A stretch of DNA of 64,000 nucleotides. Source: Mustelus asterias. Lineage: Eukaryota. The stretch lies in assembly GCF_964213995.1 (NCBI RefSeq), contig NC_135824.1:52824001-52888000 (forward strand). The letters are read 5' to 3'. Positions 33,922-63,866 of this stretch are shown piece after piece. The stretch's first letter is position 1, and every line of letters starts with the position of its first letter. The notes under the pieces were generated by a model that searched no databases, was not told where the DNA came from, and saw only the letters and a list, made by a program, of their open reading frames with translations. The translations under genes and the position numbers were made by a program.

Positions 33922-34823
33922 TCATCTTTTAATGAATTGAGTAATAGGAGTAAAGGAATACTTCAGCACATTCTTCAACTGCTGTCTGAACTGAGTCTGT
34001 GTCACGGCATAAATCGCAGTGTTCGTGCAACAACTCAGGAGCTGCAGCATGAAGCCCAATTCCATAACATAATCATGCATCTGTACAGACTGATACCCCA
34101 AATAATATATTCGACTCCATATAGAATAAACCAGTATCATTGACCATAACAGAACGAAATTGGCTGAGATAACAAACAGTAAAATTATGGATTTCCTTCG
34201 ACTCTCCATCTCTGGGTCTCTGGGATTCTCTCCACTGCTGTGAGCCCGGAGTCTCTTGCGGGCTCTGCTGCTCACTACAATGTGTTGGACAGTGAAAATA
34301 TTGAGCACCAGAATCAGAGCAAATGGGATGAACGGGTTTAGAATGTTATGGAGGACCTCGAATATTGTCCAGCCCAGAGAATCCATAGCATCGTCTGTGT
34401 AATCACAAAACCAGGGGGTGTTCACCCGCCAATACCCATCTGCTAGCATAAAATACCAGAAAATGTTCTTTAAACAGGACACCACACTCACTGTTCCCAG
34501 AACCACAGCCGCAGTTTTCTCATTGCAATATTTACTTTTCAGCTTGGGACAGCAAATGGCCACAAATCGATCAAAGGTGAAAGTGACAGTGAACCAGACG
34601 GAACAGTCAGTGGCTGCATAAAGCAGGACGGCGTGGATATTGCACACAGGGATAGACCACAGGAAATTAAACTGTTCCGGATAAAGCATAGGAACGTGTC
34701 TGAATATCAGGTCGAAGATAATAACCAGTAGATCCGCCACTGACATAGACACCAGGTAGCAAGTGACACATTTGGACAGTCCACAGTCTTTGCATTTCAG
34801 GGTCACAACTGTGATCAAGTTCA
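33922..34823 (-). CDS. GPR139/GPR142-like class A GPCR paralogue A, exon 2 (TM1-TM7)
   Basis: Open 300 codons; SMSVADL (TM2), TFDRFVAICCP (TM3), LSCCTNTAIY (TM7); AG acceptor 34825-34824, phase 1. Confidence 0.92.
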
Positions 34824-35544
34824 CTGTAAGGAAGGGAAATAAATAATGAAATTATACATCAGGCTGGGCAAGTGGTTATCAGATTGATCGAGGTAATGTT
34901 GACAAAGTGAAATAAATCACACACGTGCACACACTCACAAACATGCACAAACTCTCATAAAGACACAGAAACAACACACACAAAAACACAGAAACAAACA
35001 TGCTCATCGACATTCAAACACTCATACACAAGCATATTAATGCATGCGTGCACACACACACAAACATACATGAACACACAACCATGAAAACAGTGTGACG
35101 AATCTGTGCCTTCAAGAAATGCATTTGTGTCATGTTTCTTGTGTTGGATTTTTTTTAAGCAGTCAGTTCTATGTACCGGTGCCACTTTGTCTGCGACTGA
35201 CAGCCTACATGTTGATGCCACAGAAGCATAATTGGTCCTAATTGCTGGAATGCTTGTTTTTTTTATCTGGGCTAATGTAAATTGTTATCTTAGTTGTTTC
35301 CCTGGGCCTTTTCAGAATGGATCTTGATTAGATTGATTGACAGGAGAAGTCATGTGACTGCGTGGCTAGGCTCCCAGAGGGGAACAAGCTTTGTTGCTGC
35401 ATGGGAGCTGTAGAGAGAAGTAACTCCTTCTTTCTCCAAAAATTGGAGACTCGGATCTGCTCGAAAATAGACCGTTGTCTGAAGTCCTGCTGTTTGAAGT
35501 TAGACCATTCACGGGAAACTGCTGTATGGGAGTCAGAAAACAGG

Positions 35545-36810
35545 CGTCAAAATCCTGGAAATCTCTCCCTAACAGCACTGTGGGTGTACCTACACCATCT
35601 GTACAGACTGATGACCGAAACAATCCTGGAGGACTCTCCCTCACAGCACTGTGGGTGTACCTACACCACATAGAATGACTGCTATCCAGCAACAGTTCTG
35701 GAACTCTCTCCCTAACAGGACACTGGGTGTACCTATAACACCTGTGTAGACTGATGTCCAGTAACAATCCTGGAACTCTCTCTCTTTAACCTCATTGTGG
35801 GTGTACCTACACCACATGAACAGACTGATGTCCAATAACAATCCTGGAACTCTCTCCCTAACAGCACTGTGGATGTACCTACACCATGTGGAGATGCCGG
35901 TGTTGGACTGGGGTAAGCACAGTAAGAGGTCTCACAACACCAGGTTAAAGTCCAACAGGTTTATTTGGTAGCATGTGCTTTCGGAGTGTCGCTCCTTCTT
36001 CAGGTGAGTGATGAAGAGGCAGCGCTCCGAAAGCTCACGCTACCAAATAAACAGGTTGGACGTTAACCTGGTGTTGTGAGACTTCTTAATGTACCTACAC
36101 GTCATGGACAGGCTGATGTCCAATAACAATCCTGGAACTCTCTCCCTAACATCACTGTGAATGTACCTACATCACCTGTACAGACTGATGTCCAGTACCA
36201 ATCCTGGAACTTTCTCTCTAACAGCACTGTGGATGTACCTACATCACCTGTGCAGACTGGTGTCCAATAATAATCTTGGAACTGTCTCTCTCTCTAACTT
36301 CATTATGGGTGTACCTACATCACCTGTACAGACTGATGTCCAATAACAATCTTGGAACTCTCTCTCTCTAACCTCATTGTGGGTGTACATACATCGCCTG
36401 TACAGACTGATGTCCAATAACAATCCTGGAACTCTCTCCCTAACAGCATTGTGGGTGAACCTACACTACCTGTACAGATTGATATCCAAAAGAGTCCTGG
36501 AGCACCCTCCCTAACAGCACTGTGCATGTACCAACACCACATGGACAGACTGACGTCCAATAACCATCCTGGAACTTTCGCGCTAACAGCATTGTGGGTG
36601 TACCTACACTACCTGTACAGATTGATGTCCAATAACAATCCTGGAGCACCCTCGCTAAGAGCACTGTGCATGTACCAACACCACATAGACAGACTGATGT
36701 CCAATAACATCTTGGAACTGTCTCCCTAACAGCACTATGGGTGTACCTACACCACATGGACAGATTGATGTCCAATAGCAATCCTGGAACTGGCTCCCTA
36801 ACAGCACAGT
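35545..36810. repeat. ~71-74-bp minisatellite derived from a LINE 3' end (about 14-15 units)
   Basis: Unit AATCCTGGAACTCTCTCCCTAACAGCACTGTGGGTGTACCTACACCA...; its first part matches the LINE sequence at 14419-14455. Confidence 0.88.
35885..36088. mobile_element. Fold-back Penelope-like pLTR insertion with two back-to-back degenerate hammerhead cores
   Basis: Inverted arms of ~85 bp; 12-bp target duplication ATGTACCTACAC (35873-35884, 36089-36100). Confidence 0.8.
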
Positions 36811-36989
36811 GCTAATCAGCAGGAGGTTTCCTTGCCCATGTTTGACCTGGTGCCATGAGACTTCATGGGTCCAGTGTCAATGCTCGGAGTTCCCTGGGAC
36901 AACTCCCTCCTGACTGTACACCACCTGCTGGGTCTGTCCTGCCGGTGGGACAATATATATCCTGGGATGCGAATGGTGGTGTCTGAGAC

Positions 36990-37330
36990 ATCTTAGAAAC
37001 CCTACAGCACAGAAAGAGGCCTTCGGCCCATCGAGTCTGCACCGACCACAATCCCACCCAGGCCCTATCCCCATATCCTTACATATTTACCCACTAATCC
37101 CTGTAACCTACGCATCCCAGGACACTAAGGGCAATTTTTTAGCATGGCCAATCAACCTAACCCGCACATCTTTGGACTGTGGGAGGAAACCGGAGCACCC
37201 AGAGGAAACCCACGCAGACACGAGGAGAATGTGCAAACTCCACACAGACAGTGACCTAAGCCGGGAATCGAACCCAGGTCCCTGGAGCTGCGAAGCAGCA
37301 GTGCCAACCACTGTGCTACCGTGCCGCCCC
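36990..37330 (-). mobile_element. HE1-type SINE
   Basis: Full-length; closely similar to 27018-27360. Confidence 0.85.
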
Positions 37331-38855
37331 AATTTTCTGTAAGATATAATTCTGTGAGTATGACTATGTCAGGCTTTTGCTTGACTCGGCTGTGAGACAG
37401 CTCTACTTTCAGCACAAGCTCCCAGATGTTATTAAGGAGGATTTTACAGGGCTGGGTTTGCCAATGTTATTTCTGGTGCTTAGGTCAATGCTGGCTGTTG
37501 CATTCTGTTTTATATCTTTGACACTTTTTAGTGCTTTGATACAACTCACTAGCTTGCTGGGCCATTTCAGAATCAATCTCATTGCTACAGGTCTGGAATT
37601 ACATGTAGGCCAGACCAAGCAAGAATGACAGATGTCCTTCCCTGGGGACAGTAGTGAACCAGATGGGTTTTTGCAACAATTGACAGTGGTGTCATGGTCA
37701 TTATTACACTTTAAATTCCAGATTGTGTCTCTTATAGAATTGAAATTCCACCAGCTGCCATGATGGAATTTGAACCTATGTCCCAGAGTCCCTTTCTCTC
37801 TGGATTATTCGTACAGTGATAACATCACTTTGTTCTTAAAACCTGGGCTGGGTCAGGCAGAGCCCCCCTCTTTTTCCCTCCTTGCAGATCTTCCCCTCTC
37901 TGCAGCCTCTGTTCCATTTGTTGGCCATGTCACAGACCCTGACGCACTGTAACTACAGTCCCCATGGTTGATGAACCAAAGCCTCTGTCCTCCCTGAATG
38001 TATAGAGCAGCTGACAGCACAACTTCCAGAAACCCATCCACAATACCCCTACAAACTCTCCAAAGGCAGACGTAAGTCAAAAGGCCCTCAGCGAGTTAGA
38101 TGCGTGGTCTGTTTTGAATGACACGAGAGGGTCTCCTCGTTTTGCTGAAGACATGTTGAGTTGAGAGTGACAAACGCGGGCGTTCAGTGGACGGTTACAG
38201 ACCACGTTTCACAGACGTGTGTCAGAGCTACTGAAACAACCCCCACCCCGCCCCTCGTCCAACATGGAGCAACACACGGGAGACTCCAGAAAGGGAACCC
38301 GCAGAATTTCATTTTTTCTGCGCCCTGTCACGCTGATGTCAGTGACGAGATAGAGCCTAATTTCAAAATCAGGAAGAGATACAGAGTGAAAGAAAATTAA
38401 CTTTCGGCAGGAAATTGGACAAATATTTAACAGGGAATACATTGAAGGATTATCTGAAAAGGGAGTGTGACGAATTGGAATGCTGGGGCAACATGAAGTA
38501 TTCAAACACAAGAAGGTGAATGTTAAAACTCAGGCATTGCTAGATTGGTTGAAGTGGCTCATTCAAATCACATTCAGACATTTGCTCTTGTTACAGATCC
38601 ATGGAGGGTGGACCTAGATAGGATCAGTGCCCCATGTGGGCAAGTGCCGAGACCACAATAGAAGTGACTGGTGGAGTTGTTCACAACATTAGCGCATCCA
38701 TCATTAATGCAAAATGGCGGGTAGAAATATAGAATTGGAAAATAGTTTCAAATAGAGTTACAAGCAGTAGAATTTTGGAAAATGGAGAAAGAGATGGGGA
38801 CTCAAAGGGGTAATGCCATGGAGGGATTTGATCAGGAGTGAGAATATTAATATTA

Positions 38856-40480
38856 AGGCTGAGGGGTGACCTGATCGAGGTGTACAAGATTATGGGGGGC
38901 ATGGACAGGGTGGATAGGGAACAGCTGTTCCCCTTAGTTGAAGGGTCAGTTACGAGGGGACACAAGTTGAAAGTGAGGGGTTGGAGGTTTAGGGGGTATT
39001 TGAGGAGAAACCTTTTTACTCAGAGAGTGGTGACGGTCTGGAATGCGCTGCCTGGGAGGGTGGTGGAGGCGGGATGCCTCACATCCTTTAAGAAGTACCT
39101 GGATGAGTTCTTGGCATGCCATCATCGTCCACCAAGTCCTTCTCTGGTGAATACTGATGCAAAGTACTCATTTAATACCTCGCCCATTTTCTCTGGCTCC
39201 ATGAATAAATTCCCTCCCCTCTCATTGAGTGGATCAACCCTTTCCCTGGCTACCCTCTTAATGTTTATATATGTATGAAAAGCCTTAGGATTTTCCTTAA
39301 TCCTGTTGGCCAATGACTTTTCGTGCCCCCTTTTAGCCCATCTGACTCCTTGATTAAATTTCTTTCTACTTTCCTCGTTTGCTTCATATGTTCCCAGCCT
39401 CCTCGCTTTGACAAATGCTCCCTTTTTCTTTTTGACTCTACTCACAACATCTCCCGTTATTCAGGGTTCCCAAGATGTGCCATATTTATCCTTCATCTTT
39501 ACAGGAATGTGCCAGTCCTGAATTCCTATCAACTTACACTTGAAAGCCTCCCACATGCCAGATATTGATTTGCCCTCAAACATCTGCCCCCAATCTACAT
39601 TCTTCAGTTCTGCCTAATATTGTTGTAATTAGCCTTCCCCCAATTTAACACCTTCACCTGAGGACTACACTCATCTTTATCCATCAGTACCTTAAAGATT
39701 ACTGAATTGTGGTCACTGTCCCTGAACTGCTACCCTACTGAAACATCAACCACCTGGCCAGGCGTATTCCCCAATACCAGGCCCAATGTGGTCCCTTCCC
39801 GAGTTGAACCATCTACATGGTGTTTGAACAAGCTTTCCCGGATGCTCCTTACAAACTCCTTACAAACTCCTTACAAACTCCTTACAAACTCTGCCCCATC
39901 CACACTCCTAGCACTAAGTGAGTCCCAATCAATATCGGAGAAGTTAAAATTATCCACCATAACAACCCTGTTACTTTTACATGTTGCCAAAATCTGCCTA
40001 CATATCTGTTCCTCTGTCTCCCGCTGGCTGCTAGGAGGCCTATAGTAAACCCCCAACATTGTGACTATACCTTTCCTATTCCTGAGCTTTACCTATATTG
40101 CCTCACTATATGAGACCTCCGAGGTGTGCTCCCGCAGAACAGCTATGATATTCTCCTTAACTAGTAGTGCAACTCCCCTTTTACACCCCCCTCTATCACA
40201 CCTAAAACATCTGTATCCTGGAACATTTAACTGTCAATCCTATCCTTCCCTTAACCAAGTCTCTGTAATGGCAACAGCATCGTAGTTCCAAGTATTAATC
40301 CAAGCTCTAAATTCATCTGCCTCACCTGTTACACTTCTCGCATTGAAACAAATGCACTTCAGTCCACCAGACACTCTTTGATCAGCAATTACACCCTGCC
40401 TGCTCTTCCTCTGAGTCTTACTGACCCTACTCGTTTCCCTTCACTTAATTCCCACCCCCCTGCCAAACTAGTTTAAATTT
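38856..40480. mobile_element. CR1 LINE with internal inversion (3' part + at 38856-39122, endonuclease part - at 39125-40480)
   Basis: LRGDLIEVYKIM...FTQRVV on plus abuts LGVYYRPP/KENPKAF on minus. Confidence 0.75.
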
Positions 40481-40978
40481 TTCTACAAAGTGTTGGATAT
40501 GTGGATTTAACGAATACCCAGATGAGGGTTTATCCAGCGGACAGGTTGATCCAGAGGATGATATTCTGGAGGTTATGGTGCTCCGGACTGGGGATGGATG
40601 GGATTTGGACTCAGCAATGTACTCAGTGTCAAAGGGGATAAAGGAGGTTCCACTCACTCTGGTTCAGCCTCAGATTTGGTCAGATGCAGGAATGGAGTCA
40701 AGGGATGGGGAAGGGGCTCCATTTCCATATTGCCAATACTTAAATAAAAAGGAAAGCGATGCAATGGAACACAGATTACAGACATCATATTTGGAGACAG
40801 TGGATTGCCAGGAATTAAAAAGGAGAAAGCAAGTGGTCAAGGATACTGCAAGTGCGGCCAGTGGTTTGTGGGATTAATAACTTGATTCAGGGATTCAACA
40901 GAAACACAACAGCAAAAAGGGCAGAGTAAATGACAAGAACAGGGTTTATAGAATTAATAATCGGACAGACAGACTTAC

Positions 40979-41159
40979 CAGGGACACCAACAATTGCCAA
41001 GATGGGATAGTAAATGAATTGAATCACCTTCAGTGTAAATTTGATCCGATCAGCGAATATTATCCAGCGAGAATCTGAAGTTATCAGATTAAACATGTAG
41101 GAAAGACTTCTGTCCATTGCTGTAACATTCCAATCGATTGTTCTCAGATTCAGATCCAT
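40979..41159 (-). CDS. GPCR paralogue A, exon 1 (N-terminus + first half of TM1); spliced protein 360 aa
   Basis: MDLNLRTIDWNVTA...YYPILAIVGVP|G, 181 nt, GTAAGT donor; splicing restores GVPVNL in TM1; same layout as paralogue B. Confidence 0.88.
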
Positions 41160-41420
41160 TGTTGGAACATTCTAACCTATTGTTCTCAGATCTGGATCTC
41201 TCCTCTCCCTCTCTCTGGAGCCACTGATCTCTGTTGTGTCGGAGTTGTTGTTTCCACTGACTCTGACTACGGGATAACACATTGAAAGGAACCTCCTAAT
41301 AGATGAGGGAAACCCTCCAGTGACACAATCAGGATCCACAGAGACTGACATTAATTACAGTCACTGAACAAACACCCTTAGTTAACCCCTTTCAATCCAA
41401 CACTTTTTATGTCACAATAA
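41160..41420 (-). promoter_or_regulatory. Conserved 5'UTR/promoter of GPCR A
   Basis: Strongly similar to 60088-60345 upstream of GPCR B. Confidence 0.6.
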
Positions 41421-41594
41421 AGTCAAACATTTTTCTGGTCTCAATGTGGTTTGTAAGGGTCAGTAAGGGATGGAAAAGTAGAATTAACGGAGGGTCCGAC
41501 AATAATCTTTCAAATGTCCTTGGCTATTCTGAGTGGTCCCTCCGTTATCACGTTTGTGGGTCTTAGAGGGGTTGTCATTCGCAGGATTGTAAAG

Positions 41595-41875
41595 TAAAGT
41601 TTATTTATTAGTCACAAGTAGGCTTACATTAACACTGCAATGAAGTTACCATGAAAATCCCCCAGTCGCCACACTCCGGCGCCTGTTCAGGTCAATGCAC
41701 CTAACCCGTACATCTTTGGACTGTGGGAGGAAATCACAGTACCCGGAGGAAACCCACGCAGACACGGGTAGAACGTGCAAACTCTAGCCGGGCACTGACC
41801 CAAGTCAGGAACCGAACCTGGGTCCCTGGTGCTGTGAGGCAGCAGTGCTAACCACTGTGCCACCGTGCCACCCCA
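41595..41875 (-). mobile_element. HE1-type SINE (tail type 1)
   Basis: Head, core and tail recognisable. Confidence 0.8.
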
Positions 41876-43692
41876 TTGATAGGGACTGCTGATGGCGAGG
41901 CTGCTATTGAATGAACACTCTGTTATAAATAAGAACAAAGACCAAAGAAAAGTACAGCACAGGAACATGCCCTCCAAGCCTGCACCAATCATGGTGCCTA
42001 CCTAAACTAAAACCATATGCACTTACGGAATCCGTATCCTTCCATTCCCATCCTATTCATGCATTTGTCTAATTGCCTCTTAAACGCTACTATCATACAT
42101 GCTCCCACCACTTCCCTGGGCAGCGCGTTCCAGACATTCACCACCCTCTGTGTAAAAACCTTGCCTCGCACATCTCCTCTAAACTTTTCCCCATGCACCT
42201 TAAATCTATGTCCCCTAGTTCTTGACTTTTCTACCCTTGGGAAGAGCATCTGACTATCCACTCTGTCCAAGCCACTCATAATCTTGTAGACTTGTATCAG
42301 GTCACCCCTCAACCTCCGTCATTCCAGTGAAAACTGTTGCCTCTTATCTGCCGCACAGACTGTTTTAACCCTCATACATAGAACATAGAACATAGAACAT
42401 TACAGCGCAGAACAGGCCCTTCGGCCCACGATGTTGCACCGACCAGTTAAAAAAAAAAACTGTGACCCTCCAACCTAAACCAATTTCTTTTCGTCCATGA
42501 ACCTATCTACGGATCTCTTAAACGCCCCCAAACTAGGCGCATTTACTACGGTGGACAAATAACTACGGGTAGACTTCTTATTAGTACAACCAATATTTAC
42601 TTAAACCCACACAATCAATAATCACCCACCCATCCAACGACAAGTTATCTTACAGGAAAATACTAAAGTTCAAGTCCAATCTCTGCCAGTTAAAAAAAAC
42701 CACAAGAAATAAAACACATTCCAATGTGATGATGTCACGATTTCTTCAAGACAAAGGAAAGAGCACATGGTTCCCTCCAAGGTTTAAATCCTTTCTTAAA
42801 AACATTTGAACCCAGGATTATTCAAAATTCAAATTGGTTATTTCAAACTTCAATTTATGTACTTTGATTTTGAAATTTCAATTTACTTTCCAAAAATTGT
42901 GTTCAAAGTAATGTCCCACATATATATATATATATTATTTATGTATTTATATTCTATACCTCTTAAGCACAATCATGGCCATTGATTCTACTTAAAAGGT
43001 TAAGGAATTCCAAAAATTTATTTCAAATGAATCCAATCCAATTTCCAATTTTCTTTTAAACTCTGTATCAAACCCACTGTTGTAAAATCACAATTCGGGG
43101 AAGAACATTGAAACATTAAAGCAAACAACAAAAACATCCACGCAACCACTTTATTAAACACACACAGACACACATGGAAGCTTCCAACATTCATTCCACA
43201 GCACTTCCTCTTTCATTCAAACTTAACATTTTAAACTGGGATGAAAATAAAACATTTATAGAAAAAAACAGAAAATTGATTACGATGGTCGCTTTCATTC
43301 TTCTTTCTTCCAAACTGTAATTAAACTCAAAAACAGAAGTAAATTCAAGAAGTCTTATACTTAAATTTTAACAGTTTTAACACTTCCTCAGCCCCTTTGA
43401 AGTTAAACCAAAGTGTAAAGCATTGCATTTATTGCCTGCAATAAATATTCCCCAAGAACAAACAGGCTTTAACAACTCCTGCTCTCAATCTAATTCAACA
43501 ACAACCACCTACATTCGACAAGCAACCAGACCACACAAACACGCTGAAATACAAAATCTACTCAAATTATTAGCTCAACCTTAGATTTTTTCTAATCAAT
43601 TTTCCATCTTGCCAATTAATTTATAATATTTCCCCAGTAAGTTGAGAGAACATAGTTCCTTTCTCTCAAAATTCTGTAACACACACTGCACA

Positions 43693-43704
43693 CTCCCCCC
43701 TTTT
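43693..43704 (-). other. Polypurine tract
   Basis: T-run, then AAAAGGGGGGAG, directly followed by TG. Confidence 0.7.
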
Positions 43705-44958: not shown

Positions 44959-44976
44959 GTCCCGGCGGAGTCGCCA
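44959..44976 (-). other. Primer binding site complementary to the 3' end of tRNA-Arg(UCU)
   Basis: TGGCGACTCCGCCGGGAC, 2 nt after the LTR CA end; matches the recalled vertebrate tRNA-Arg-TCT end GTCCCGGCGGAGTCG+CCA. Confidence 0.8.
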
Positions 44977-45972: not shown

Positions 45973-47605
45973 ACAACATAGAACAGTACAGCACAGAACA
46001 GGCCCTTCGGCCCACGATGTTGTGCCGAGCTTTATCTGAAACCAAGATCAAGCTATCCCATTCCCTATCATCCTGGTGTGCTCCATGTGCCTATCCAATA
46101 ACCGCTTAAATGTTCCTAAAGTGTCTGACTCCACTATCACTGCAGGCAGTCCATTCCACACCCCAACCACTCTCTGCGTAAATAACCTACCTCTGATATC
46201 CTTCCTATATCTCCCACCACGAACCCTATAGTTATTCCCCCTTGTAATAGCTCCATCCACCCGATGAAATAGTCTTTGAACGTTCACTCTATCTATCCCC
46301 TTCATCATTTTATAAACCTCTATTAAGTCTCCCCTCAGCCTCCTCCGCTCCAGAGAGAACAGCCCTAGCTCCCTCAACCTTTCCTCATAAGACCTACCCT
46401 CCAAACCAGGCAGCATCCTGGTAAATCTCCTCTGCACTCTTTCCAGCGCTTCCACATCCTTCTTATAGTGAGGTGACCAGAACTGCACACAATATTCCAA
46501 ATGTGGTCACCAAGGTCCTGTACAGTTGCAGCATAACCCCACGGCTCTTAAACTCCAACCCCCTGTTAATAAAAGCTAACACACTATAGGCCTTCTTCAC
46601 AGCTCTATCCACTTGAGTGGCAACCTTTAGAGATCTGTGGATATGGACCCCAAGATCTCTCTGTTCCTCCACAGTCTTCAGAACCCTACCTTTGACCCTG
46701 TAATCCACATTTAAATTATCCTTACCAAAATGAATCACCTCACATTTATCAGGGTTAAACCCAATTGCCATTTTCAGCCCAGCTTTGCATCCTATCTATG
46801 TGTCTTTGCAGCCTACAACAGCCCTCCACCTCATCCACTACTCCACCAATCTTGGTGTCATCAGCAAATTTACTGATCCACCCTTCAGCCCCCTCCTCTA
46901 AGTCATTAGTAAAAATCACAAAGAGCAGAGGACCAAGCACTGATCCCTGTGGCACTCCGCTTGCAACCTGCCTCCAATCCGAAAATTTTCCATCCACCAC
47001 CACCCTCTGTCTTCGATCAGACAGCCAGTTACCTATCCAATCTGCCAACTTTCCCTCTATCACACACCTCCTCACTTTCATCATAAGCCGACCATGGGGG
47101 ACCTTATCAAACGCCTTACTAAAATACATGTACATGACATCAACTGCCCTACCTTCATCAACACACTTAGTTACCTCCTCAAAAAATTCAATCAAATTTG
47201 TGAGGCACAACTTGCCCTTCACGAATCCGTGCTGACTATCCCGGATTAATCCGCATCTTTCTAAATGGTCGTAAATCCCATCCCTAAGGACCTTTTCCAT
47301 CAATTTACCAACGACCGAAGTAAGACTAACCGGTCTATAATTAGCAGGGTCATTTCTATTCCCTTTCTTAAACAGAGGAACAACATTCGCTATTCTCCAG
47401 TCCTCTGGCACCATCCCCGTGGACAGTGAGGACCCAGAGATCAAAGCCAAAGGCTCTGCAATCTCATCCCTTGCCTCCCAAAGAATCCTAGGATACATTT
47501 CATTAGGCCCAGGGGACTTATTGGCCTTCAGTTTATTCAAAACTGCCAGGACATCCTCCCTCCGAACATCTATTTCCTCCAGCCTATTAGCCTGTTACAC
47601 CTTCA
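45973..47605 (-). mobile_element. 5'-truncated CR1 LINE flanked by Penelope-like fragments (45835-45971 -, 47637-48006 +)
   Basis: RT ORFs 46048-47540; near-identical to 6670-8320. Confidence 0.9.
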
Positions 47606-48920: not shown

Positions 48921-49139
48921 TTTAGCATGGCCAATTCACCTAACCAGCACATCTTTTGGACTGGGGGAGGAAATCGGAGAACCCGGAGGAAACCCACGCA
49001 GACACGGGGAGAACGTGCAACCTCCACACAGACAGTGACCCAAGTCAGGAATCGAACCCGGATGCCTGGCACTGTGAGGCAGCAGTGCTAACCACTGTGC
49101 CACCATGCTGCCCACTGTGCCACCGTGCTGCCCGTGTCA

Positions 49140-49164
49140 ATGAATAGGGAGAGCGAGAGACAGG

Positions 49165-49196
<32 letters not shown>

Positions 49197-49625
49197 CAGG
49201 GAGAGGTAGAGAGACTGGGAGAAAGGGAACGGGAGATTGAGAGGCTGGAAGAAAGAGCGACTGGGGGCGATGGGAGACCAGTGGATAGAGAGTGACTGGG
49301 AGAAAGGGAACGGGAGATTGAGAGGCTGGAAGAAAGAGCGACTGGGGGCGATGGGAGACCAGTGGATAGAGAGAGACTGGGAGAAAGGGAACGGGAGATT
49401 GAGAGGCTGGAAGAAAGAGCGACTGGGGGCGATGGGAGACCAGTGGATAGAGAGTGACTGGGAGAAAGAGAGAGAAAAACTGGCAGAGAGCGAGAGAGAC
49501 TGAGGAAGAGACAAACTGAGAGTCTGGGAGAGAGAGGGAGACTGAAGGAGAGAGAGACTGAGAGAGAGAAACTGGGAGAGATCGGGAGAGACTGAGAGAG
49601 AGAGAGAGAGGCTGGGAGAGAATGG
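49140..49625. repeat. GA-rich low-complexity tract containing three near-perfect ~81-bp tandem units (49213-49465)
   Basis: GACTGGGAGAAAGGGAACGGGAGATTGAGAGGCTGG... repeated three times. Confidence 0.85.
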
Positions 49626-49639
49626 AAGATTGGCTCGAG

Positions 49640-50662
49640 GATTAGAGGGGTTTTCACGCCCTGAAAATTTAGTTTAGTTTGTTGATGATCTTTTGTTACA
49701 AACTGAAACTAAATCGGAACATCTCCAGTTGCCAGATGAATTGCCTAACTTGCTCACTAATTTCCATTGTAAAGTTAACCCTAATAAAGCTCAAATCATG
49801 TGGTCTCGTGTGGTTTATTTGGGTACTGTCGTTACTCAAGGTAAACATGAGATTGAACAAAAATGAATTGATTCTATTTTACAATTGCCTCTTCCGAAGG
49901 ATGTTGATGCACTTTGATCTATCCTTGGTTTAGTGGGATACTGCAGAAATCACATTGATGCGTTTGCAACTAAAGCTCCTCCATTGTCAGGGCTACTGTG
50001 CAAAAATGCTTTATGGCTGCAGACTGAGCAGCACACACAGGCAGTATCTGATTTAAAGCGTGCTTCAGCTTCAGCACCAGTATTATTGGTGTCAGATCCT
50101 GACCTCCTGTTTGCATTGGAAGTGGCAACAATCGATTTAACTCTCTCAGCTGTTCTTTTACGGGAAAGATACAACAGACTGGGACCTGTGGCTTACGCCT
50201 CTCAACTCCTTACTCCAGTGGAACAAGGGGTTTACTGTGTGTGAGTGCCATCTTCTCGCGGTGTTTTGGGCTGTACAATTCTTTTCATATAAAACTGGCT
50301 TTCACCCCTCACAATTTTAACAGAACATACACCTCTTCAACTTTTGTCAGATGGCTCTGTTAGTCAAGTTCATTCAGCACGATGGACCCTTTTGTTCCAA
50401 GACAGGGATATTACAGTTAAATGTACCAAAACAGCCACCTTTCTGGCCGATGATCTTCATTATTGGGGTGAGTATCATAAACACCAAGTAGTGGCAGCTA
50501 ATGATCCCAAGAGACCATTTGTGCCAAAACAACTGAGGGAGCGGCGGGGGGGGGGGGGGGGGGGGGGGGCGGGGGGGGGGGACGGCGTTTAGCAGCGCAG
50601 GAAGAAAATGTACAGCAATTATGAGATGCTTTTGTTGACGGGTCTTCAAGGCTGGAGGATGG
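49640..50662 (+). mobile_element. Retroviral-like pol remnant (RT thumb, RNase H-like connection, start of second RNase H)
   Basis: GYCRNHIDAFATKA, SAPVL, PVAYASQLL, HLLAVFWAV, then FVDGSS at ~50631-50648; frameshifted. Confidence 0.75.
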
Positions 50663-55470: not shown

Positions 55471-56034
55471 ATTGGATTTGCTTATTGTACAAATCACCCC
55501 ACTCAACAGCTAAAGAAAGATGATCAAGACTAATAACGAGAAAAGATGTGAAAGAATAAGATATCACCCTGTAAAAATCAAATTGGAATGAGATTTGATC
55601 CACGTAGGAATCCATTAATGGAATTAATAAATAGCAAAAGATCAAATTTAATCATTTAAAAATGATAGGAGGATTGGGAAATGGGCTGTGAGTTATAGTG
55701 ATGTCTGTGGAGCCAGCCCACACTGACAGGAGAGAACACAATGTGAAATATTTGAAACATAGCAGCAGAGTTATTCTGTGGAGCATCAAAGACTCAGACG
55801 ATCGCTCAACGTCAAGGTGGAGAAACCGACGTGGAATGATTAATTCTCAAAATGACGTTCAACGGGGCTTTATTTCACAGTGCGTAACTATCTTTGATTC
55901 TGTAAGTACTCTTTCGTTCTTTTAAGCATTTAATATCTGTTAGCATGTTAAGGCATTCCAGCAAGATTACATGTAGTTTGCTTTGTTGTGCTGAGGGGGA
56001 AGCCAAGGCAAGACTTGCAGGTCTGCTGATGTAG

Positions 56035-56640
56035 GAGGTGGTGGCGGGGAGGGGGGGGGGAGGGGGGGGAGGGCTATGCTACTGTGGTGATGGGGGGAGG
56101 GGGTGGGGGACGCCTATGCTACTGTGGTGATGGGGGGGGGGAGGGGGTGAGAGCTATAATACTGTGGTGATGGGGAGGGGTTGGGGGACGACTATGCTAC
56201 TGTGGTGATGGGGGAAGAGGGGGAGGACTACGCTACTGTGGTGATGGGGGAGGGGAGAATGAACTATTGTGGTGATGGGGAGGGGGTGGGGGAGGAATGA
56301 GCTACAGTCGTGATGAGGGAGGGGGTGGGGGAGCGGGGGGGTGGGTGGGAACTGAGCTATTGTGGTGATGGAGGAGGGGTGACAGGGAGACTCTGCAAAC
56401 AGGGGTGGGGGAGAAGAGAGGGTGGAGTGGGAGACAGTCATCAGGGACGTGGCGGAAGAGCGGGGAGGGCAGAAATGCAATTGGAGATGGGGGGAGTTGA
56501 GGGTCACTCTGCAATTGGGGGAAGGGGGAATGAGAGAGAGAGTGTGTGAGGGCGGCGCACTGGGGAGGGGTTGACAATGTGGGTGAGTGTCTCTGATGTC
56601 CATGGAGTGGGGGGGGGGGGGGGAGGTGTGGCGACTGTGT
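56035..56640. repeat. G-rich degenerate tandem repeat (~35-40 bp, CTATGCTACTGTGGTGATGGGG...)
   Basis: Unit repeated about 8 times with G-runs. Confidence 0.7.
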
Positions 56641-57755
56641 CCACAGCGGGGAACGGTTCTGGCAGGAGAGCTGCTGTTTTGCTGCATTCTGCGCTCGTGC
56701 GCTTTTCGGGCCTCTGATCCAAGCTGCCGGCTTTCAGGTGATTTAAGTTCCGCCCCCTCCCCTACTGGTGAGTAACGGATTGAAGGATTTGTTTTTGCTC
56801 TAAGTGCGTAAGATTCCAGATTTGGACTCCCCAAAAAACAGATCTGAAACTCTTTTGTTTTCACACTCATTCTGGACTGAGAATGTTTTTCATAAGATCG
56901 CCCCTAACATATTTCAAAATAACATTATGCATGGATTAGAATATTCTCCAACTCTTCATTTGTCTTCGGGATATTTCTAATTAGGCTTACTTACTACAGG
57001 TCCTTAAACAGTTCCAACTCAAGTCTTTCACTTTAACTTTTTTTGTGAAAGGTACGGGTGCGTTTAATTCTGTCCCAATTGTTTTGAGATCGGTTTTTCT
57101 ATGGAGTCTGTGTCAGTGCCTTGATCATTTCATGGGGCTTTTTGACTCCACTGGCCCTATTAACCATTTCATGCCATGTTGTTTGTCAAGTAGTGTGCAT
57201 GTCTGAGACCCGTTCTTCAGTGTATAATTGCAAGCAATCCCAAATCCTTGGATGGGCCTATTTTGAACTGGTTTCCTGCATTTTAGCTACTTCACACGTA
57301 ACTCATCTGCACACTTACAGTATCTCAATATCATGCCAGCACCGTCTTGACTCTCAGGCGATCTTATCAAAAGATTTTGAAGTCTTTCCTCTCCATGTGT
57401 GGTCCAAATGCTTCCAGTGGTGGCCAGAGTATCAAATTTTGTTCTCTTAAAAAGAAACATAGACAATGACACAAATATCACCAAGCGAAAGCTATCAGTT
57501 TACTAGCCTTCTCTGTACTTTCCCTTTACTAGAATATACATCAATGCCAGATTGAAATATTCCATGGAATTGAACCCAATATCCTATTTACTGTTTTGAT
57601 TTCCAGTCTCTATCTTCTCCCCTCAATTAATTCTATCTAATTTGATGCATCTCACCAGTTATTATCCAATCACAGTCATGAGATGATATCCCAGGCGCGT
57701 TCTCCCTGTGTCTGTGTGGGTTTCCTTCAGGTACTCCGGATTCCTCCCACAGTCC

Positions 57756-58288
57756 GACCGGGCATCTTTCTTAACGATGGTCATGATGATGGTGTCTCTG
57801 AAATCTCCCGCCATTTTCTCCTCCTTCAAGATATTTGTGCCGTTAGTGCTTTTCTGTCACATTTTAGTGCTTCGACAGGGGATTCCATCTGCTCCTGTTG
57901 CTTATTTGTTCTTTAGCCATCGGATGGCCTGTCCCACCTCCTGCCGTGCAAGGGTTTTGCTGAAATGGTGGCGGATAGCACGTTGCGAATGGAATCAAGG
58001 TGACTTTGCTTTGAAGTGGGAGTCAGTGAAGGAGGAGTTTGAAGTGCTGCTTCCAGCAGGCCTGACTGCCTCTGTGTTGTTGATGAACAGATCTCCGTTC
58101 TTGGCCAGTAGTCAGGTGGCGCCCTGGGTGCTCGGCCATAAGTGGTCTCGACCGTGCTAAAGAAATGTCCGCAGAATCACCAGCACTTTCTCCATCTGTT
58201 CTTTATCGCAGGTTTCCTTTGCTGGAAGTCAGCCACCAGCCGTCTGTGGAGTTGTATCTTTCTCGCTCTCGGGTTGGATTTCTGTTTC
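57756..58288 (-). mobile_element. RTE-clade LINE fragment
   Basis: Minus strand W.QHF..., K.K.ATGADGIP.E, GDFRDTIIMTIVKK-type linker motifs. Confidence 0.6.
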
Positions 58289-58289
58289 A

Positions 58290-58995
58290 AAGAACAACGA
58301 ACAAAGGAAATTAAGCACAGGAACAGGTCCTTCGGCCCTCCAAGCCTGCACCGAAGATGCTGCCCCACTGAACTAAAACCCCCTACCCTTCCGGGAACCA
58401 TATCCCTCCATTCCCATCCTATTCATGGGTTTGTCAAGACACCCCTTAAAAGTCACTATCATATCTGCTTCCATTAACTCCCCCAGCAGCGAGTTCCAGG
58501 CACCCACCACCCTCTGGGTAAAAAACGTGCCTCGTACATCTCGTTTAAACCTTGCCCCTCGCACCTTAAACCTATGCCCCCTAATAATTGAATCTTCCAC
58601 TCTGGGAAAAAGCTTCTGACTATCCACTCTATCCATGTCCCTCATAATCTTGTCGACTTGTATCAGGTTGCCCCTCAACCTCTGTCTTTCCAGTGAGAAC
58701 AAACCAAGTTTCTCCAACCTCTCCTCATAGCTAATGCCCTCCATACTGGGCAACATCCTGGTAAATCTTTTCTGTATCCTCTCCAAAGCCTCCACATCCA
58801 TCTGGTAGTGTGGCGACCAGAATTGAACACTATATCCCAAGTGCAGCCTAACCAAGATTCTATAAAACTGCAACATGACTTGCCAATTTTTAAACTCAGT
58901 GCCCCAGCCGATGAAGGCAAGCATGCCGTATGCCTTATTGAGTACCTTCTCCACCTGCATCGCCACTTTCAGTGACCTGTGTACCTGTACATCCA
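58290..58995 (-). mobile_element. CR1 LINE 3' fragment
   Basis: 207-aa ORF2 C-terminus. Confidence 0.88.
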
Positions 58996-59777
58996 AAGTT
59001 CAGAAAATCCTCGTAGCCTATGAGCTCTCACGCTAAAGGAACCTCACCTGTCCACATTGTCCCTGTCCCTTTAGTCCATAGGGTTCGTTTCTTTAATCGC
59101 AGCCTTAAATTGCAAACTTTACTTGTATACCTAACGTCAAGCTCACTTCCCTCATCAACTTCCTCATAGCTTTGGCAACAATCTCCTTTGGGTTCATCAG
59201 AGACGATTTTTCATTTACATCCGCGTGCTTCTAATTCTTTATAACACCAGTTTTCATAAAGAAAGACGCGTTTGATCCTGAATTGGGGCCTCTCGAAATA
59301 TACTCACAAGAGATTTAATGCTGAATTCCCGACACTTCCAGTGTTCAACCATCTCTGCTTTCCTCAAACAGCTCCTCCCCCACTGCAGTGAGGCGACTTG
59401 TCACGAGCTGTCCCCAGCACACCTTCTAATTCTATCTTTTACTTTCGTTTTATGCTTTTAAAACTGGACTCTAACTCTTTCAAGCTCTCTAATACCGCTC
59501 TATTTACCTTTCTCTACACCCTAGCTATGACGATAAAACAATATTCTGCACCCTCTCCCTTCCTTCCCTCTATGTATTCTATGAACGGTATGCTTTGCCT
59601 GTATGATGAGCAAGAAACAATCCATCTCACTGTATCCCAGTACGTGTGACAATAAATCAAATCAAAAAACAAAACTTCCATATCCAAGAATGTTTGAAAG
59701 ATTATGTACAACCCCTCTGCCATTTCATCATTCATTCCCTCAGTGACCCTCATATATCGTGTTGACTTTACTGTCGT

Positions 59778-60088
59778 AGGGCAGCATGGTGGCACAGTGC
59801 TGAGCACTGCTGCCTCACAGTGCCAGGGACCGGGTTCAATTCTGGTCTCGGGTCACCGTCTGTGTGGCATTTGCACGTTCTCCCCGTGTCTGCGTGGGTT
59901 TCCTTCAGGTGCTCCGGTATCCTCCCACAGTCCAAAGATGTGCGGGTTAGGTTGACCGGCCATTCTAAAATTGACACGAGTGTCAGGGGGATTAGCAGGG
60001 TACAAAGGGTTTGGGATTGTGGTCGGTGCAGACTCGATGGGCCAAATGGCCTCCTTCAGCACTGTAGGGATTCGATGGGATTCTATGA
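59778..60088 (+). mobile_element. HE1-type SINE
   Basis: Head, core and tail type 2. Confidence 0.85.
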
Positions 60089-60345
60089 TTGTGAAATGAA
60101 AAGTGTTGGATTGAAAGGGGTTAACTGAGGCTGTTTGTTCAGTGGCTGTACTTAATGTCAGTCTCTATGGATCTTGATTGTGTCACTGGAGGGTTTCCCT
60201 CATCTATTAAGAGATTCCTTTCAATGTGTTATCCCATAGTCAGAGTCTGTGGGAGCAACAACTCTGACACAACAGAGATCAGTGGCTGCAGAGAGAGGGA
60301 GAGGAGAGATCCAAATCTGAGAACAAAGGTTAGAATGTTGCAACA

Positions 60346-60526
60346 ATGGATCAGAATCTGAGAACAATCGATTGGAATGTTACAACAATGGACAGGGATT
60401 TACCCCAAGGACTTTACTGGCTATTCACATACTATGATGTGCTTTCATTAGCGGACCGGATCTATTATGTACTCTTAGTTATTCAAGCGGGATACTATCC
60501 CATCCTGGCTATTGTTGGTGTCCCTG
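60346..60526 (+). CDS. GPR139/GPR142-like GPCR paralogue B, exon 1
   Basis: MDQNLRTIDWNVTT...YYPILAIVGVP|G, 181 nt, GTAAGT donor at 60527. Confidence 0.88.
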
Positions 60527-60640
60527 GTAAGTCTCAATCTGCACCTATTCATTCTGTAGACCAGGCTGAAATGTATTAATATTATTTCGGGAAGACTGAA
60601 TGCATTGTATTTCGGGAAGACTGAATGCATTGTATCCCCA

Positions 60641-61050
60641 CAGGCAGGCTGTGGGGATTACAAATAGTGTGACATGAACCCAATATCCCTCTGTCACACT
60701 ATTTGTAATCCCCACAGCCTGCCTGGACCTGCAGAGTCTCACTGGCTGTCCTGCCTGGAGACAATACACATCTCTTTAGCCTGTCTTGATGCTCTTTCCA
60801 CTCACATTGTTTGTATCTTAAAGACTTGATTAGCTGTAAGTATTCGCATTCCAACCATTATTCATGTAAATTGAGTTTGTGTCTTTATGTGCCCTGTTTG
60901 TGAACAGAATTCCCACTCACCTGAAGAAGGGGCTTGGGGCTCCGAAAGCTTGTGTGGCTTTTGCTACCAAATAAACCTGTTGGACTTTAACCTGGTGTTG
61001 TTAAACTTCTTACTGTGTTTACCCCAGTCCAACGCTGGCATCTCCATATC
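60641..61050 (+). mobile_element. Penelope-like pLTR with 5' inverted segment
   Basis: Homologous to 25960-26272 and 47650-48006; perfect 34-bp inverted repeat at its 5' end. Confidence 0.8.
60918..60954 (+). ncRNA. Minimal type I hammerhead ribozyme motif with intact core
   Basis: CAC-CUGAAGA-A-GGGGCU-UGG-GGCUCC-GAA-AGCU-U-GUG. Confidence 0.72.
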
Positions 61051-61919
61051 TTCACTCTGTCTCCCGTGTGTTGCTCCACGTTGGATAGGGGGTGGGGGGC
61101 GGGGGGGGCGGGGGGGGGGGGGGAGGGAGGTTTCAGCAGCTTTGACACATGTCTGTGAAACGTGATCTCTGTCCATCCACTGAACGCCCAAATTAGTCAC
61201 TCTCAACTCAACGTGTGTTCAGCAAAACGAGGAGACCCTCTGGTGTCATTCAAAACGGACCACGCATCTAACTCGCAGCTGAGGGGCTTTTGACTTACTT
61301 CTGCCTTTGGGAAGTTAGTGGAGGTGTTGTGGATGGGTTTCTGGGGGTTGTGCTGTGAGCTGCTGTATACTTTCAGGGAGGCCGTGACACATTACTGTGC
61401 TTACATTCAGGGAGGACAGAGGCTTCAGTGCTCCAACTCTGGGGACTGTGGTTACAGTGCGCCAGGGTCTGTGGCATGGCCAACAAATGGAGCAGAGGCT
61501 GCAGAGAGAGGAAGCTCTGCAAGGAGGGAGAAGGAGGGGGTATCTGCCCTGCCTACCATGTGTTTTCCAAGAACATTTTACCACCCAACACCTAACCCAG
61601 GAGTAGAGCTTGAGGCGAGACAGATTCAACAAGAAAATTTCAAAGATGATTTCATTTCTCAACCATTTGTAATGGGTTCTTACTGAACAAACAGATTCCA
61701 GAAGGATGCCTTAACATAAAGTATTTTGTAGAACGATTGAATCCATGCAGTGCAGAAAAAGGCCATTCGGCCCATCCAGTCTGCTGGTGGCGATGCGGGT
61801 CTTCTTGTTTTCCCGGGCTACATTGCGGGCCAGCTTGAGGGTCTCGGCAGCCAGGTACACTGGCTCCCTGGCACCTACCTGCATGGCATACTGGCCACAG
61901 TGTGTGTAGCATGAATGGC

Positions 61920-62633
61920 AGTGGCACGCTGGCACAGTGGTTAGCGCTGCTGCCTCACAGCGCCAGGGACCCAGGATCAATTCCAGCCTTGGATCACTGT
62001 CTGTGCACAGTCTGCACATTCTCCCTGTGTCTGCGTGGGTTTCCTCTGGCTGCTCCGGCTTCCTACCACATTCCAAAGATGTGCCGGTTAGGTTGATTGG
62101 CCATGCTAAATTAGCCCTAGTGTCAGGGGGGCTAGCAGGGCAAGTGGGAGTTAGGGGAATAGGGCCTGGGTGGAATAGTGGTTGGTACAGACTCGATGGG
62201 CCGAATGGCCTCCTTCTGTACTGTAGGGATTCTATTCTACACAACTGTTCTTTTTACGCTTTGTATATAAGCGTGTGTCAGTGTGTGTACTTGTCCGTCT
62301 ATGTTTCTTTGTGTCAGTGTGAATGTTTAAAGTTTTATTTATTAACGTTACGAGTGGGCTTACATTAACACTGCAATGTAGTTACTGTGAAAATCCCCCA
62401 GTCGCCACACTCCGGCACCTGTTCGGGTACACTGAGGGAGAATTTAGCACGGCCAATGCACCTAATCAGCACGTCTTTCGGGCTGTGGGAGGAAACTGGA
62501 GCACCCGGAGGAAACCCACGCAGACGCAAGGAGAACGTGCAGACTCCACAGAGACTGTCACCCAAGCCAGGAATCGAACCCGGGTCCCTGGCGTTGTGAG
62601 GCAGCAGCGCTAACCACTGTGCAGCCATGTTGC
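61920..62633. mobile_element. Two HE1-type SINEs tail-to-tail (61920-62238 +, 62325-62633 -)
   Basis: Both heads and cores present; they carry different tails. Confidence 0.82.
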
Positions 62634-62940
62634 TCATGTGTGAGTTCGTCACTGTTGGTGCTTATCAGTGTGTTTCCACGTTCATGTGCACGAGAGTGAG
62701 TCCCTGAGTGTTTCTGCGTGTGGTTGGTCTTGTGTTTCTTCTCCATGTGCTCTTGCGTGTATATAAGTATGTATGTGAGTGTGTTAAAGTGCATGTATCT
62801 GTGTGAATGTGTGTGCTTACACATGTGTGTTAGTCTGTTTTAGTAGCTATGTATTTTGCGTGAGAGTGTTTTCAATCATGTGTTTCAGTTCATTTTCTGC
62901 TGCCTGACAAATATTTTCTGTTGATTTCACCTCTGTGCAG

Positions 62941-63866
62941 TGAACCTAATAACAATTGTCATCCTCATTCGTGGAAAAAGTGGTCTTTCCAAATGTGTCA
63001 CTCGATACCTGGTGACCATGGTAATAGCGGATCTACTGGTCGTTATCCTGGACCTGATATTGAGTCAGATTCCCACTGTTTTTCGGAATCAGTTTATTTT
63101 TGTGCTGTACATCCCCACATGTAATATCCACGCCGTCCTGCTTTATGCCGCCACTGACTGTTCCGTCTGGTTCACCGTCACTTTCACCTTTGATCGATTT
63201 GTGGCCATTTGCTGCCCCAAGCTGAAAAGTAAATATTGCAGTGAGAAAACGGCAGCTGTGATTCTGGGAACAGTGAGTGTGGTGTCCTGTTCAAAGAACA
63301 TTTTCTGGTATTTTATGTTATCACGTTCGTATTGGCTAGGGAACTTCCCTTGGTTTTGCCTGATAATGGGCACAGTCAATTTTCTGAGTAACCCAGTCTA
63401 TGGATCACTGGAGTTACTCCATCATATTCTAAATCCATGTGTCCCATTTGTCCTGATTCTGCTGCTCAATATTTTAACCATCCAACACATTGTAGTGAGC
63501 AGCAGAGCCCGCAGCAGACTCCGGGCTCACAGCAGTGCGGAGAGTCCCAGAGACCCAGAGATGGAGAGTCGAAGAAAAGCTATAATTTTGCTGTTTGTTA
63601 TCTCAGCCAATTTCATCCTGTTATGGTCAGTCTTCATGGTTTACTCTACTTGGATTCGGATGTTTTATTTAGGGTATGAATCTGTATATATCGACCGGTT
63701 TGCTCAGGAACTAGGCTTCATGCTGCAGCTCCTGAGTTGCTGCACAAACACTGGGATATATGCCATGACACAGACTCAGTTCAGACAGCAGTTGAAGAAT
63801 GTGCTGAAATACCCCTTTATTCCCATTCTTCAATTGATTAAATCAAGAGAAGACCTGAGGCACTGA
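62941..63866 (+). CDS. GPR139/GPR142-like GPCR paralogue B, exon 2; spliced protein 368 aa
   Basis: CAG acceptor at 62938-62940; plus strand reads (G)TG AAC CTA ATA = VNLI; IADL, TFDRFVAICCP and LSCCTNTGIY motifs; open to TGA at 63866. The ORF track strand label is wrong. Confidence 0.93.

Follow-up and report, generated by a model that had tools for sequence, protein, structure and literature searches.

Are the two G protein-coupled receptor (GPCR) genes that lie in a 64,000-nucleotide (nt) stretch of the Mustelus asterias genome (contig NC_135824.1, positions 52,824,001 to 52,888,000; hereafter the window, which contains zero N letters) ordinary single receptors, or do they belong to a repertoire of receptors whose copies differ in what they bind? 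The question was raised by an earlier note on this DNA, which had read the pair as GPR139-like receptors with fixed intracellular loops and hypervariable extracellular faces. Sharks are famed for their chemical sensing yet have few genes of the odorant receptor (OR), TAAR and ORA families, and the family described here is a candidate for the missing sensor repertoire, be it chemosensory or immune. Our answer is that the two genes, called A and B below, are old paralogues in a large class A GPCR family of sharks and rays, and that this family probably forms a repertoire with diversified outer faces.

The list of open reading frames (ORFs) and the DNA itself show that A and B are two intact two-exon class A GPCR genes, arranged head to head. 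Two long ORFs, one at 33922..34824 on the minus strand (300 aa) and one at 62940..63866 on the plus strand (308 aa), both translate to seven-transmembrane proteins. A third ORF at 40887..41159 on the minus strand (90 aa), which is that of exon 1 of gene A, carries the N-terminus quoted by the earlier note; the N-terminal peptides quoted for the two genes were located at 41108 (minus strand) and 60397 (plus strand). Gene A spans 33922-41159 on the minus strand. The coding part of its exon 1 (41159..40979, 60 codons plus 1 nt) covers a leader, the variable N-terminus and the start of the first transmembrane segment (TM1), and contains a second in-frame ATG at 41117. It is followed by a donor GT at 40978-40977 and by an intron of 6155 nt (34824..40978), rich in short interspersed elements (SINEs) and other repeats, of which the acceptor AG ends at 34824. 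Exon 2 (34823..33925 plus stop, or 33922..34823 with the stop included) runs from the end of TM1 to the C-terminus, and the coding lengths of 181 and 899 nt make up 360 codons. Gene B (60346-63866, plus strand) is composed of exon 1 at 60346..60526 with a second in-frame ATG at 60388, a donor GT at 60527-60528, an intron of 2414 nt (60527..62940) with the acceptor AG ending at 62940, and exon 2 at 62941..63863 plus stop (62941..63866 in all), so that 181 + 923 nt give 368 codons. The ORFs and the canonical GT-AG introns therefore agree with the two intact two-exon receptors of 360 and 368 aa that had been predicted. The possibility that the genes are pseudogenes was ruled out, since neither the two ORFs nor any of the four splice sites is disrupted. 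About 19 kb of debris of SINEs and long interspersed elements (LINEs) lies between the genes.

All sequence searches were run exon by exon, with exon 2 or exon 1 separately. When the exons were compared with the whole window by tblastn, A and B were found to be 71.4% identical in exon 2 (301 aa) and 59.7% identical in exon 1 (62 aa); no third copy was found in the window, the next match having an E value of 0.05. Both exon-2 products matched the Pfam family 7tm_1, scoring 77.8 (A) and 58.9 bits (B) at a cut-off of 30.5. Membership of the OR family was ruled out because Pfam gave no OR-type match, only 7tm_1 and a marginal one to nematode Srx.

To compare the two proteins region by region, borders were placed using class A landmark residues and then checked on an AlphaFold model of the homologue P0005, which is a natural protein (73% identical) and not one of the window proteins. 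This model (predicted local distance difference test, pLDDT, 85.9; predicted template modelling score, pTM, 0.84) contains seven helices, a short helix in the first extracellular loop (ECL1), a hairpin in ECL2 and helix 8. The landmarks of class A receptors are invariant or nearly so: the Asn of TM1, the Asp of TM2, the Cys at the top of TM3 with its counterpart in ECL2, the Asp-Arg at the end of TM3, the Trp of TM6 and the Asn..Tyr of TM7; TM6 is without its usual Pro. With seven helices, helix 8 and these landmarks, the modelled fold is that of a class A GPCR.

The conserved regions of A and B are identical at 26/26 positions in TM3, 16/17 in the second intracellular loop (ICL2), 25/28 in ICL3 and 15/15 in helix 8. 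The variable regions share only 7/20 residues in ECL1, 10/30 in ECL2, where there is also an indel of two residues, and 7/17 in ECL3. A similar contrast is found within exon 1: the first 17 codons hold 2 residue differences, whereas the following 28 codons are near saturation, with proportions of nonsynonymous (pN) and synonymous (pS) differences of 0.51 and 0.61, respectively, after which the start of TM1 is conserved again. In TM7, Asn-Thr replaces Asn-Pro in the translations of both genes. The near identity of TM3/ICL2, ICL3 and helix 8, the strong divergence of the N-terminus, ECL1 and ECL2 including the indel, and the NTxxY in place of NPxxY had all been noted from the letters of the DNA, and all of them are confirmed by these counts.

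How large is the family? The exon-2 product of gene A matched 1642 clusters (90% identity) at E ≤ 1e-5 among 2090 candidates. Among the best 120 of the 1642 clusters, which are 63-75% identical to it, 119 bear the name of a shark, the exception being an unnamed JGI protein. As no match exceeds 75%, the source species itself is not in the cluster database. By hand count, 64 of these best 120 clusters belong to the horn shark Heterodontus francisci, so that at least 64 are present in one species. An exhaustive search of 50%-identity representatives gave 1141 matches at E ≤ 1e-3, 174 at E ≤ 1e-10 and 111 at E ≤ 1e-30. Names were obtained for 20 of those representatives; they include rays and a skate (Mobula, Narcine, Hypanus and Leucoraja) at 36-43% identity and, beyond these, coelacanth (35%), a teleost (33%) and salamanders (28%), followed by amphioxus and an annelid. 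From the clusters with many members (at least 90% identity), ten were opened, and nine of these contain 87 distinct proteins from two genomes, those of H. francisci and Heptranchias perlo; the tenth, from S. canicula, was dropped as its members looked like isoforms. The ESM Atlas contains clusters of 56-95 members under automatic GPCR names; three of them are Chordata clusters of 70-91 members, and two of these three are named 'probable GPR139'. A scan of metagenome contigs for the pattern of a related locus yielded 210 matches, none of which was confirmed.

The cluster counts demonstrate a large lineage-specific expansion with recent duplicates, and by similarity of sequence genes A and B are members of a very large family that is expanded in sharks and rays. 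The proposal of an expanded chondrichthyan repertoire therefore stands for sharks and for rays, skate included, while its extension to chimaeras, and with it the word 'chondrichthyan', is unproven. In agreement with the claim that the family is uncharacterised, literature searches gave no paper describing it, although subscription journals and supplementary tables may mention it. The family is thus apparently undescribed, though its gene models are already public under the automatic name 'probable GPR139'.

This name raises the question of kinship. No solved structure matches better than that of GPR139, either by sequence (E 2.3e-7), with the cholecystokinin and angiotensin receptors close behind, or by fold (Foldseek E 2.4e-9, 24% identity), where the E values of the chemerin, opioid, somatostatin and neurotensin receptors are of similar magnitude; the overall identity is about 24-25%. 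The GPR139/GPR142 signatures are present: in the HMMER alignment the TM3-ICL2 motif is common to both sides, and GPR139, too, is without the proline of TM7. Two other lineages are closer. The coelacanth, salamander and teleost relatives (E values of 1.8e-18, 2.6e-13 and 1.3e-12, respectively) are not GPR139 either. The group of the coelacanth protein (P0239) is conserved in sharks (66%), sturgeon, teleosts, amphibians, turtles and squamates. That of the salamander protein (P0241) comprises 20 amphibian matches at 66-74%, with one or few per species listed; its further matches are a sturgeon protein at 46% and then members of the elasmobranch family at 32-33%. In two species, proteins of the conserved orphan group (P0290 and P0388) appear in the annotation under the name of transmembrane protein 183A, as isoforms of it. 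This suggests that the orphan and the transmembrane protein 183A genes are neighbours that annotation pipelines have fused, and that this neighbourhood is a possible synteny marker for the orphan lineage.

A maximum-likelihood tree was built by a quick search with support from the Shimodaira-Hasegawa-like approximate likelihood ratio test (SH-aLRT). It comprised 67 rows, namely the 2 exons from the window, 18 of the best 120 proteins from the cluster search, 34 of the 150 representatives, 12 proteins of the coelacanth group and 1 cluster member; GPR139 and GPR142 themselves are absent from these rows. The conserved single-copy gnathostome orphan group forms one clade (99), which is sister (92) to a clade (99) of the amphibian gene and all elasmobranch members. 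Within the latter, a shark-only core clade (100; 25 rows) contains A and B. Gene A joins two proteins of Scyliorhinus torazame (88) and the placement of gene B is without resolution. As A is nearer to the S. torazame proteins than to B, A and B are old paralogues and no recent tandem pair; a recent tandem duplication was ruled out on this ground and on an overall synonymous divergence of 0.37. In the tree, then, the nearest sister lineages of the family are two non-mammalian orphan groups.

Orthology to GPR139 or GPR142 was accordingly rejected, given the weak E value, the low identity and the closer orphan lineages. 'GPR139-like' thus holds in the sense of the nearest solved receptor with a common TM3-ICL2 motif and fails in the sense of close kinship. 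Another explanation of the locus, namely that A and B are ordinary aromatic amino-acid sensors of the GPR139/GPR142 type that were duplicated once, would fit the automatic RefSeq names, the rank of GPR139 as best match in the Protein Data Bank by sequence and fold, and the two shared motifs. With at least two other vertebrate orphan lineages much closer, such weak similarity to GPR139 itself and hundreds of copies, we consider it extremely improbable.

Is the pattern seen between A and B a property of the whole family? Column entropies were calculated for 120 homologues together with A and B. Mean values are low in TM3 (0.21 bits), TM7 (0.51), ICL2 (0.51), TM4 (0.52), helix 8 (0.63) and ICL3 (0.87), and high in ECL1 (1.13), ECL2 (1.65), ECL3 (1.91) and the C-terminal tail (1.56). 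The variation is ordered at the level of single positions. In ECL2, both strands of the predicted hairpin bear hypervariable residues in alternation with invariant ones (W, N, P, W, F, C); in ECL1 the hypervariable residues are spaced i, i+4, i+7 on the short predicted helix; and in the N-terminus conserved Leu, Arg, Ile and Gln residues are separated by positions with entropies of up to 3.5 bits. In total, some 20-30 positions vary repeatedly between copies, and these are situated in an N-terminal helix, on one face of the ECL1 helix, at alternate positions of ECL2, at the tops of TM5-TM7 and in ECL3. The whole of TM3 is invariant, including the positions that, by standard numbering, line the deep pocket of most class A receptors. 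The same picture was obtained for recent duplicates: the 87 recent paralogues differ by 314 minimal amino-acid changes, of which the three ECLs, with 22% of the sites, account for 176, and the positions changed most often are those that are hypervariable in the family as a whole. The fixed-inside, variable-outside pattern claimed from two genes consequently extends both to the family and to recent duplicates within a genome. Since the variation is confined to the outer vestibule and TM3 is invariant, peptide- or protein-sized ligands would be likelier than small odorants. Alternatively, the ligands might have a core moiety in common and differ in the contacts that they make with the outer face.

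Next to the protein pattern stands that of the DNA. Nei-Gojobori counts for exon 2 of A and B gave 0.370 synonymous (dS) and 0.182 nonsynonymous (dN) substitutions per site. Their ratio, omega, is 0.30 in the TM segments and 0.29 in the intracellular parts as against 0.78 in the ECLs together and 1.19 in ECL2. Both genes are thus under purifying selection over most of their length. For the 29 codons with an entropy of at least 2 bits among the other 120 proteins, pN is 0.545, as against 0.292 for pS over the whole gene (Fisher p 2.5e-4). Omega reaches 3.1 in the 21 most variable codons and is about 2-3 for the top codons overall when set against gene-wide pS. These counts, an informal comparison, are suggestive of diversifying selection at about 7-10% of codons.

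Silent sites are themselves uneven. By region, dS is 0.07-0.24 in TM3, ICL2 and TM4, 0.12 in ICL3 and 0.59-0.91 in the ECLs. Counting only codons for identical residues, which avoids pathway artefacts, silent differences are present in 6 of 83 codons in TM3-TM4 and ICL3 and in 28 of 122 elsewhere (Fisher p 0.0036). In 60-nt windows, identity is 0.95-0.98 at codons 61-100 and 0.48-0.58 at codons 131-160, and the longest identical run between A and B, 43 nt, was matched by 68 of 5000 shuffles. The low level of silent change in the frozen blocks points to segmental gene conversion between copies or to constraint on the nucleotide sequence, and the contrast between inner and outer parts is therefore partly an effect at the DNA level and not of protein selection alone.

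Several of these points, together with some others, count against reading the pattern as that of a diversified repertoire. When the 29 high-entropy codons are compared with local pS (0.365) instead of the gene-wide value, the excess is not significant (Fisher p 0.20), so that the predicted excess of nonsynonymous change at extracellular sites is found against the gene-wide and not against the local standard. The hypervariable codons were chosen for being variable, and the DNA-level comparison comprises one gene pair, A-B, by simple Nei-Gojobori counting. The uneven divergence of silent sites breaks the assumptions of simple dN/dS comparisons and allows an account by gene conversion or relaxed constraint. 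Among the recent paralogues, half of the 314 changes (157) came from two clusters that consist largely of partial gene models. In many GPCRs it is the extracellular loops that are under the least constraint. The split coding exons and the invariant TM3 pocket positions are unlike those of classical odorant receptors. Finally, a sequencing-run search with exon 2 of gene B found no RNA run that contains the gene; three runs from one 2024 study contain 0.26-0.29 of its words.

Could the pattern then have arisen without any diversifying function? On such an account, concerted evolution and relaxed constraint would suffice: TM3-TM4 and ICL3 stay alike from copy to copy through gene conversion, the loops drift, and the size of the family reflects duplication-prone DNA. 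The scarcity of silent differences in the frozen blocks, the uneven 60-nt identity, the 43-nt run, the near-saturated N-terminus and the non-significant local omega test are all as this account would have them. It has more difficulty with the frozen blocks being invariant across shark orders that split long ago, and not just within one genome, and with the alternation of hypervariable and invariant positions in ECL2, which marks the loops as structured and constrained. Moreover, the same positions change anew in nine independent recent clusters, pN at the hypervariable codons exceeds gene-wide pS, and both ORFs are intact. We consider this account unlikely.

If, as we favour, the family is a repertoire with diversified outer faces, its copies might also be regulated in common. 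A homology block detected by blastn extends from 41418 to 40943 in A and from 60088 to 60562 in B. It includes a cassette of ~260 bp immediately upstream of the first ATG, at 41160..41418 (minus strand) in A and 60088..60345 (plus strand) in B, which we consider a putative promoter and 5' untranslated region common to the two paralogous copies. By hand count, ~240 of its 259 columns are identical (about 93%), far above the nucleotide identity of exon 2 (80.7%). Identity continues at 48/50 in the next 50 columns and falls to 16/40 just past the second in-frame ATG (hand counts). Exact blocks of 28 and 27 nt occur window-wide only in the A and B cassettes, where 0 are expected by chance. An exact 20-nt word of the promoter was found at 2 loci in metagenome contigs, both being chance matches of 20-21 nt. 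Three elements were recognised by eye: an AT-rich homeodomain-type core at 41350-41357 in A and 60149-60156 in B, with one difference between them; a G-triplet/T-triplet/C-triplet element at 41307-41315 in A and 60191-60199 in B; and, a few bases downstream of the latter, a T/A-rich box. No clear O/E-type site was seen by eye in the cassette.

Between the two in-frame ATGs, the leader consists of tandem repeats of 21/42 nt, found at 41113-41191 (minus strand, period 21) in A and at 60314-60392 (plus strand, period 42, 1.9 copies, 86% matches) in B. It encodes a conserved unit of 14 residues with an N-glycosylation sequon, of which the Mustelus homologue P0003 has several more copies. The number of units thus varies between family members, and either of the two in-frame ATGs may be the true start codon. 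The introns, too, have a segment in common, of ~400 nt and 80% identity (A 37856-38254, minus strand; B 61113-61548, plus strand), which may derive from the ancestral intron or may be a repeat present in both genes.

The cassette bears on where such a repertoire might be used. On a strictly chemosensory account, this family would be the large set of odorant- or taste-type receptors that is missing in elasmobranchs. Each sensory cell of the olfactory rosette, or each taste or solitary chemosensory cell, would express a single member, and the common cassette would serve receptor choice. The size of the family, its growth by birth and death, the short tails, the variable ligand face and the homeodomain-type core in a conserved cassette are in line with this, as are the tiny repertoires of the catshark, for which 2+6 OR, 3 ORA, 3 TAAR and 2 TARL genes are reported (PMC11979771). 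Evidence pointing the other way comes from the same paper, which reports no GPCR among the 50 genes most specific to 'brain and olfactory epithelium' (PMC11979771). The word 'GPR139' does not occur in this 'Sensory Shark' paper (PMC11979771). To the eye, the cassette is without a clear O/E-type site, an intron splits the coding region, and the TM3 pocket positions that are variable in odorant receptors are invariant here, all of which speak against the account as well. A strictly chemosensory role is quite possible, although we would sooner bet against it.

An alternative use would be in immune or barrier cells, as leukocyte or epithelial receptors comparable to the formyl-peptide, chemokine and chemerin types, with diversification driven by pathogens or by peptides derived from them. 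Variation located on the outer vestibule and not in the deep pocket would suit such receptors. So would the fold, which is of the peptide or chemoattractant type with an ECL2 hairpin, GPR1/chemerin and C5aR1 being among the top Foldseek matches at the same order of E as GPR139. In the cassette, the triplet element would be one mismatch from a Rel/NF-kB-type site and is followed by the T/A-rich box; that this was read by eye detracts from it. The presence in the window of a germline T-cell receptor (TCR) V segment with a recombination signal sequence of the 23-nt spacer type (23-RSS) is also in keeping with an immune role, but this linkage may merely reflect duplication-prone regions. On balance, an immune or barrier repertoire appears fairly unlikely.

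The reading of the family as a ligand-diversified repertoire can be put as follows. A lineage that is seen as one gene per species in amphibians, and that is distantly related to GPR139, probably expanded in sharks and rays. Every member keeps the inward-facing surface, composed of the TM3 end, ICL2, ICL3 and helix 8, together with the core of TM3 and, as seen in A and B, the upstream cassette. The copies would have one common signalling output and, through the cassette, presumably one common transcriptional programme. Each copy would have its own outer vestibule and might thereby recognise a different ligand. The diversity would arise from duplication and diversifying selection at the outer positions, and segmental gene conversion would probably keep the inner blocks uniform. 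A more far-reaching version can be offered tentatively: the family would be the main ligand-diversified repertoire of sharks and rays, with hundreds of genes that share a G-protein module and a promoter cassette, one or few being expressed per cell, and with outer parts, namely the N-terminal helix, the ECL1 face, the ECL2 hairpin and ECL3, that selection keeps diverse and gene conversion reshuffles between copies. As a whole, this version is doubtful. The interpretation in the earlier note is thus partly supported, in that a repertoire is indicated while a sensory or immune role is a candidate only.

Several other features were noted in the window. The V segment of TCR type occupies 4048-4608 on the minus strand (Pfam V-set, E 5.1e-13), ends in the motif Tyr-Tyr-Cys-Ala-Trp-Ser and is directly followed by a heptamer, a 23-nt spacer and an A-rich nonamer; the receptor genes are thus near antigen-receptor V genes. 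A LINE retrotransposon is located at 7191-10001 (minus strand), its longest ORF of 936 aa containing a GDSL-type esterase, an endonuclease (Exo_endo_phos) and a reverse transcriptase. LINE fragments with similar translations were found at 14757-16328 on the plus strand and, on the minus strand, at 16264-17466, 17707-18588, 20786-21706 and 46048-47540. One short interspersed repeat is present in many copies (11990-12331, 26851-27195, 37152-37415, 41687-41992, 59704-59955, 62365-62652 and others); it generates look-alike spurious ORFs on both strands and accounts for most non-genic blastn matches between the gene regions. The stretch 49088-49657 is a low-complexity repeat rich in Ser, Leu and Pro that also gives rise to long spurious ORFs on both strands.

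If the more far-reaching version is correct, the family would constitute a new class of vertebrate receptors for chemosensory or innate immune recognition, and it would go some way to accounting for chemical sensing in elasmobranchs, whose OR and TAAR genes are so few. The mosaic of DNA-frozen and hypervariable parts under a common cassette offers a case study of how a fixed signalling and regulatory module can be combined with a diversifying binding face. The automatic name 'probable GPR139' is in any case misleading for a family of hundreds of intact receptors.

Comparison with known systems places the family between several of them. GPR139 and GPR142 resemble it as the nearest solved receptor by sequence and fold, in the TM3-ICL2 motif, in the missing TM7 proline and in their short tails. 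They differ from it in overall sequence and in forming a separate clade, with closer relatives of non-mammalian kind lying in between, and the shark family has hundreds of copies instead of one and a hypervariable outer face. The ligands of GPR139 are aromatic amino acids. The coelacanth (P0239) and amphibian (P0241) groups are the sister lineages in the tree, are 28-35% identical to gene A and belong to the same Pfam family, but have one or few genes per species listed and are 50-74% conserved across classes; sharks retain their own copy of the conserved orphan (P0287, 66% identical to that of coelacanth) beside the expanded family. The OR, TAAR, V1R/ORA and T2R repertoires are likewise large lineage-specific families that grow by birth and death with recent bursts, and they, too, have short N- and C-termini, variation on the predicted ligand side and a common type of promoter, which in the shark family would be the putative promoter cassette. 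The shark family lacks sequence membership in any of these, varies in loops and helix tops and has invariant TM3 pocket positions. Genes of the OR, TAAR, V1R and T2R families usually consist of a single coding exon, and A and B each have two, separated by the long GT-AG introns described above. Formyl-peptide receptors, including the vomeronasal ones, MRGPRs and chemokine receptors have in common with the family a peptide-receptor-like fold with an ECL2 hairpin. In these peptide and chemoattractant receptor families, as in the shark family, diversity is concentrated on the N-terminus and loops around a conserved core. They have no close sequence relationship to the shark family, which is far larger in copy number.

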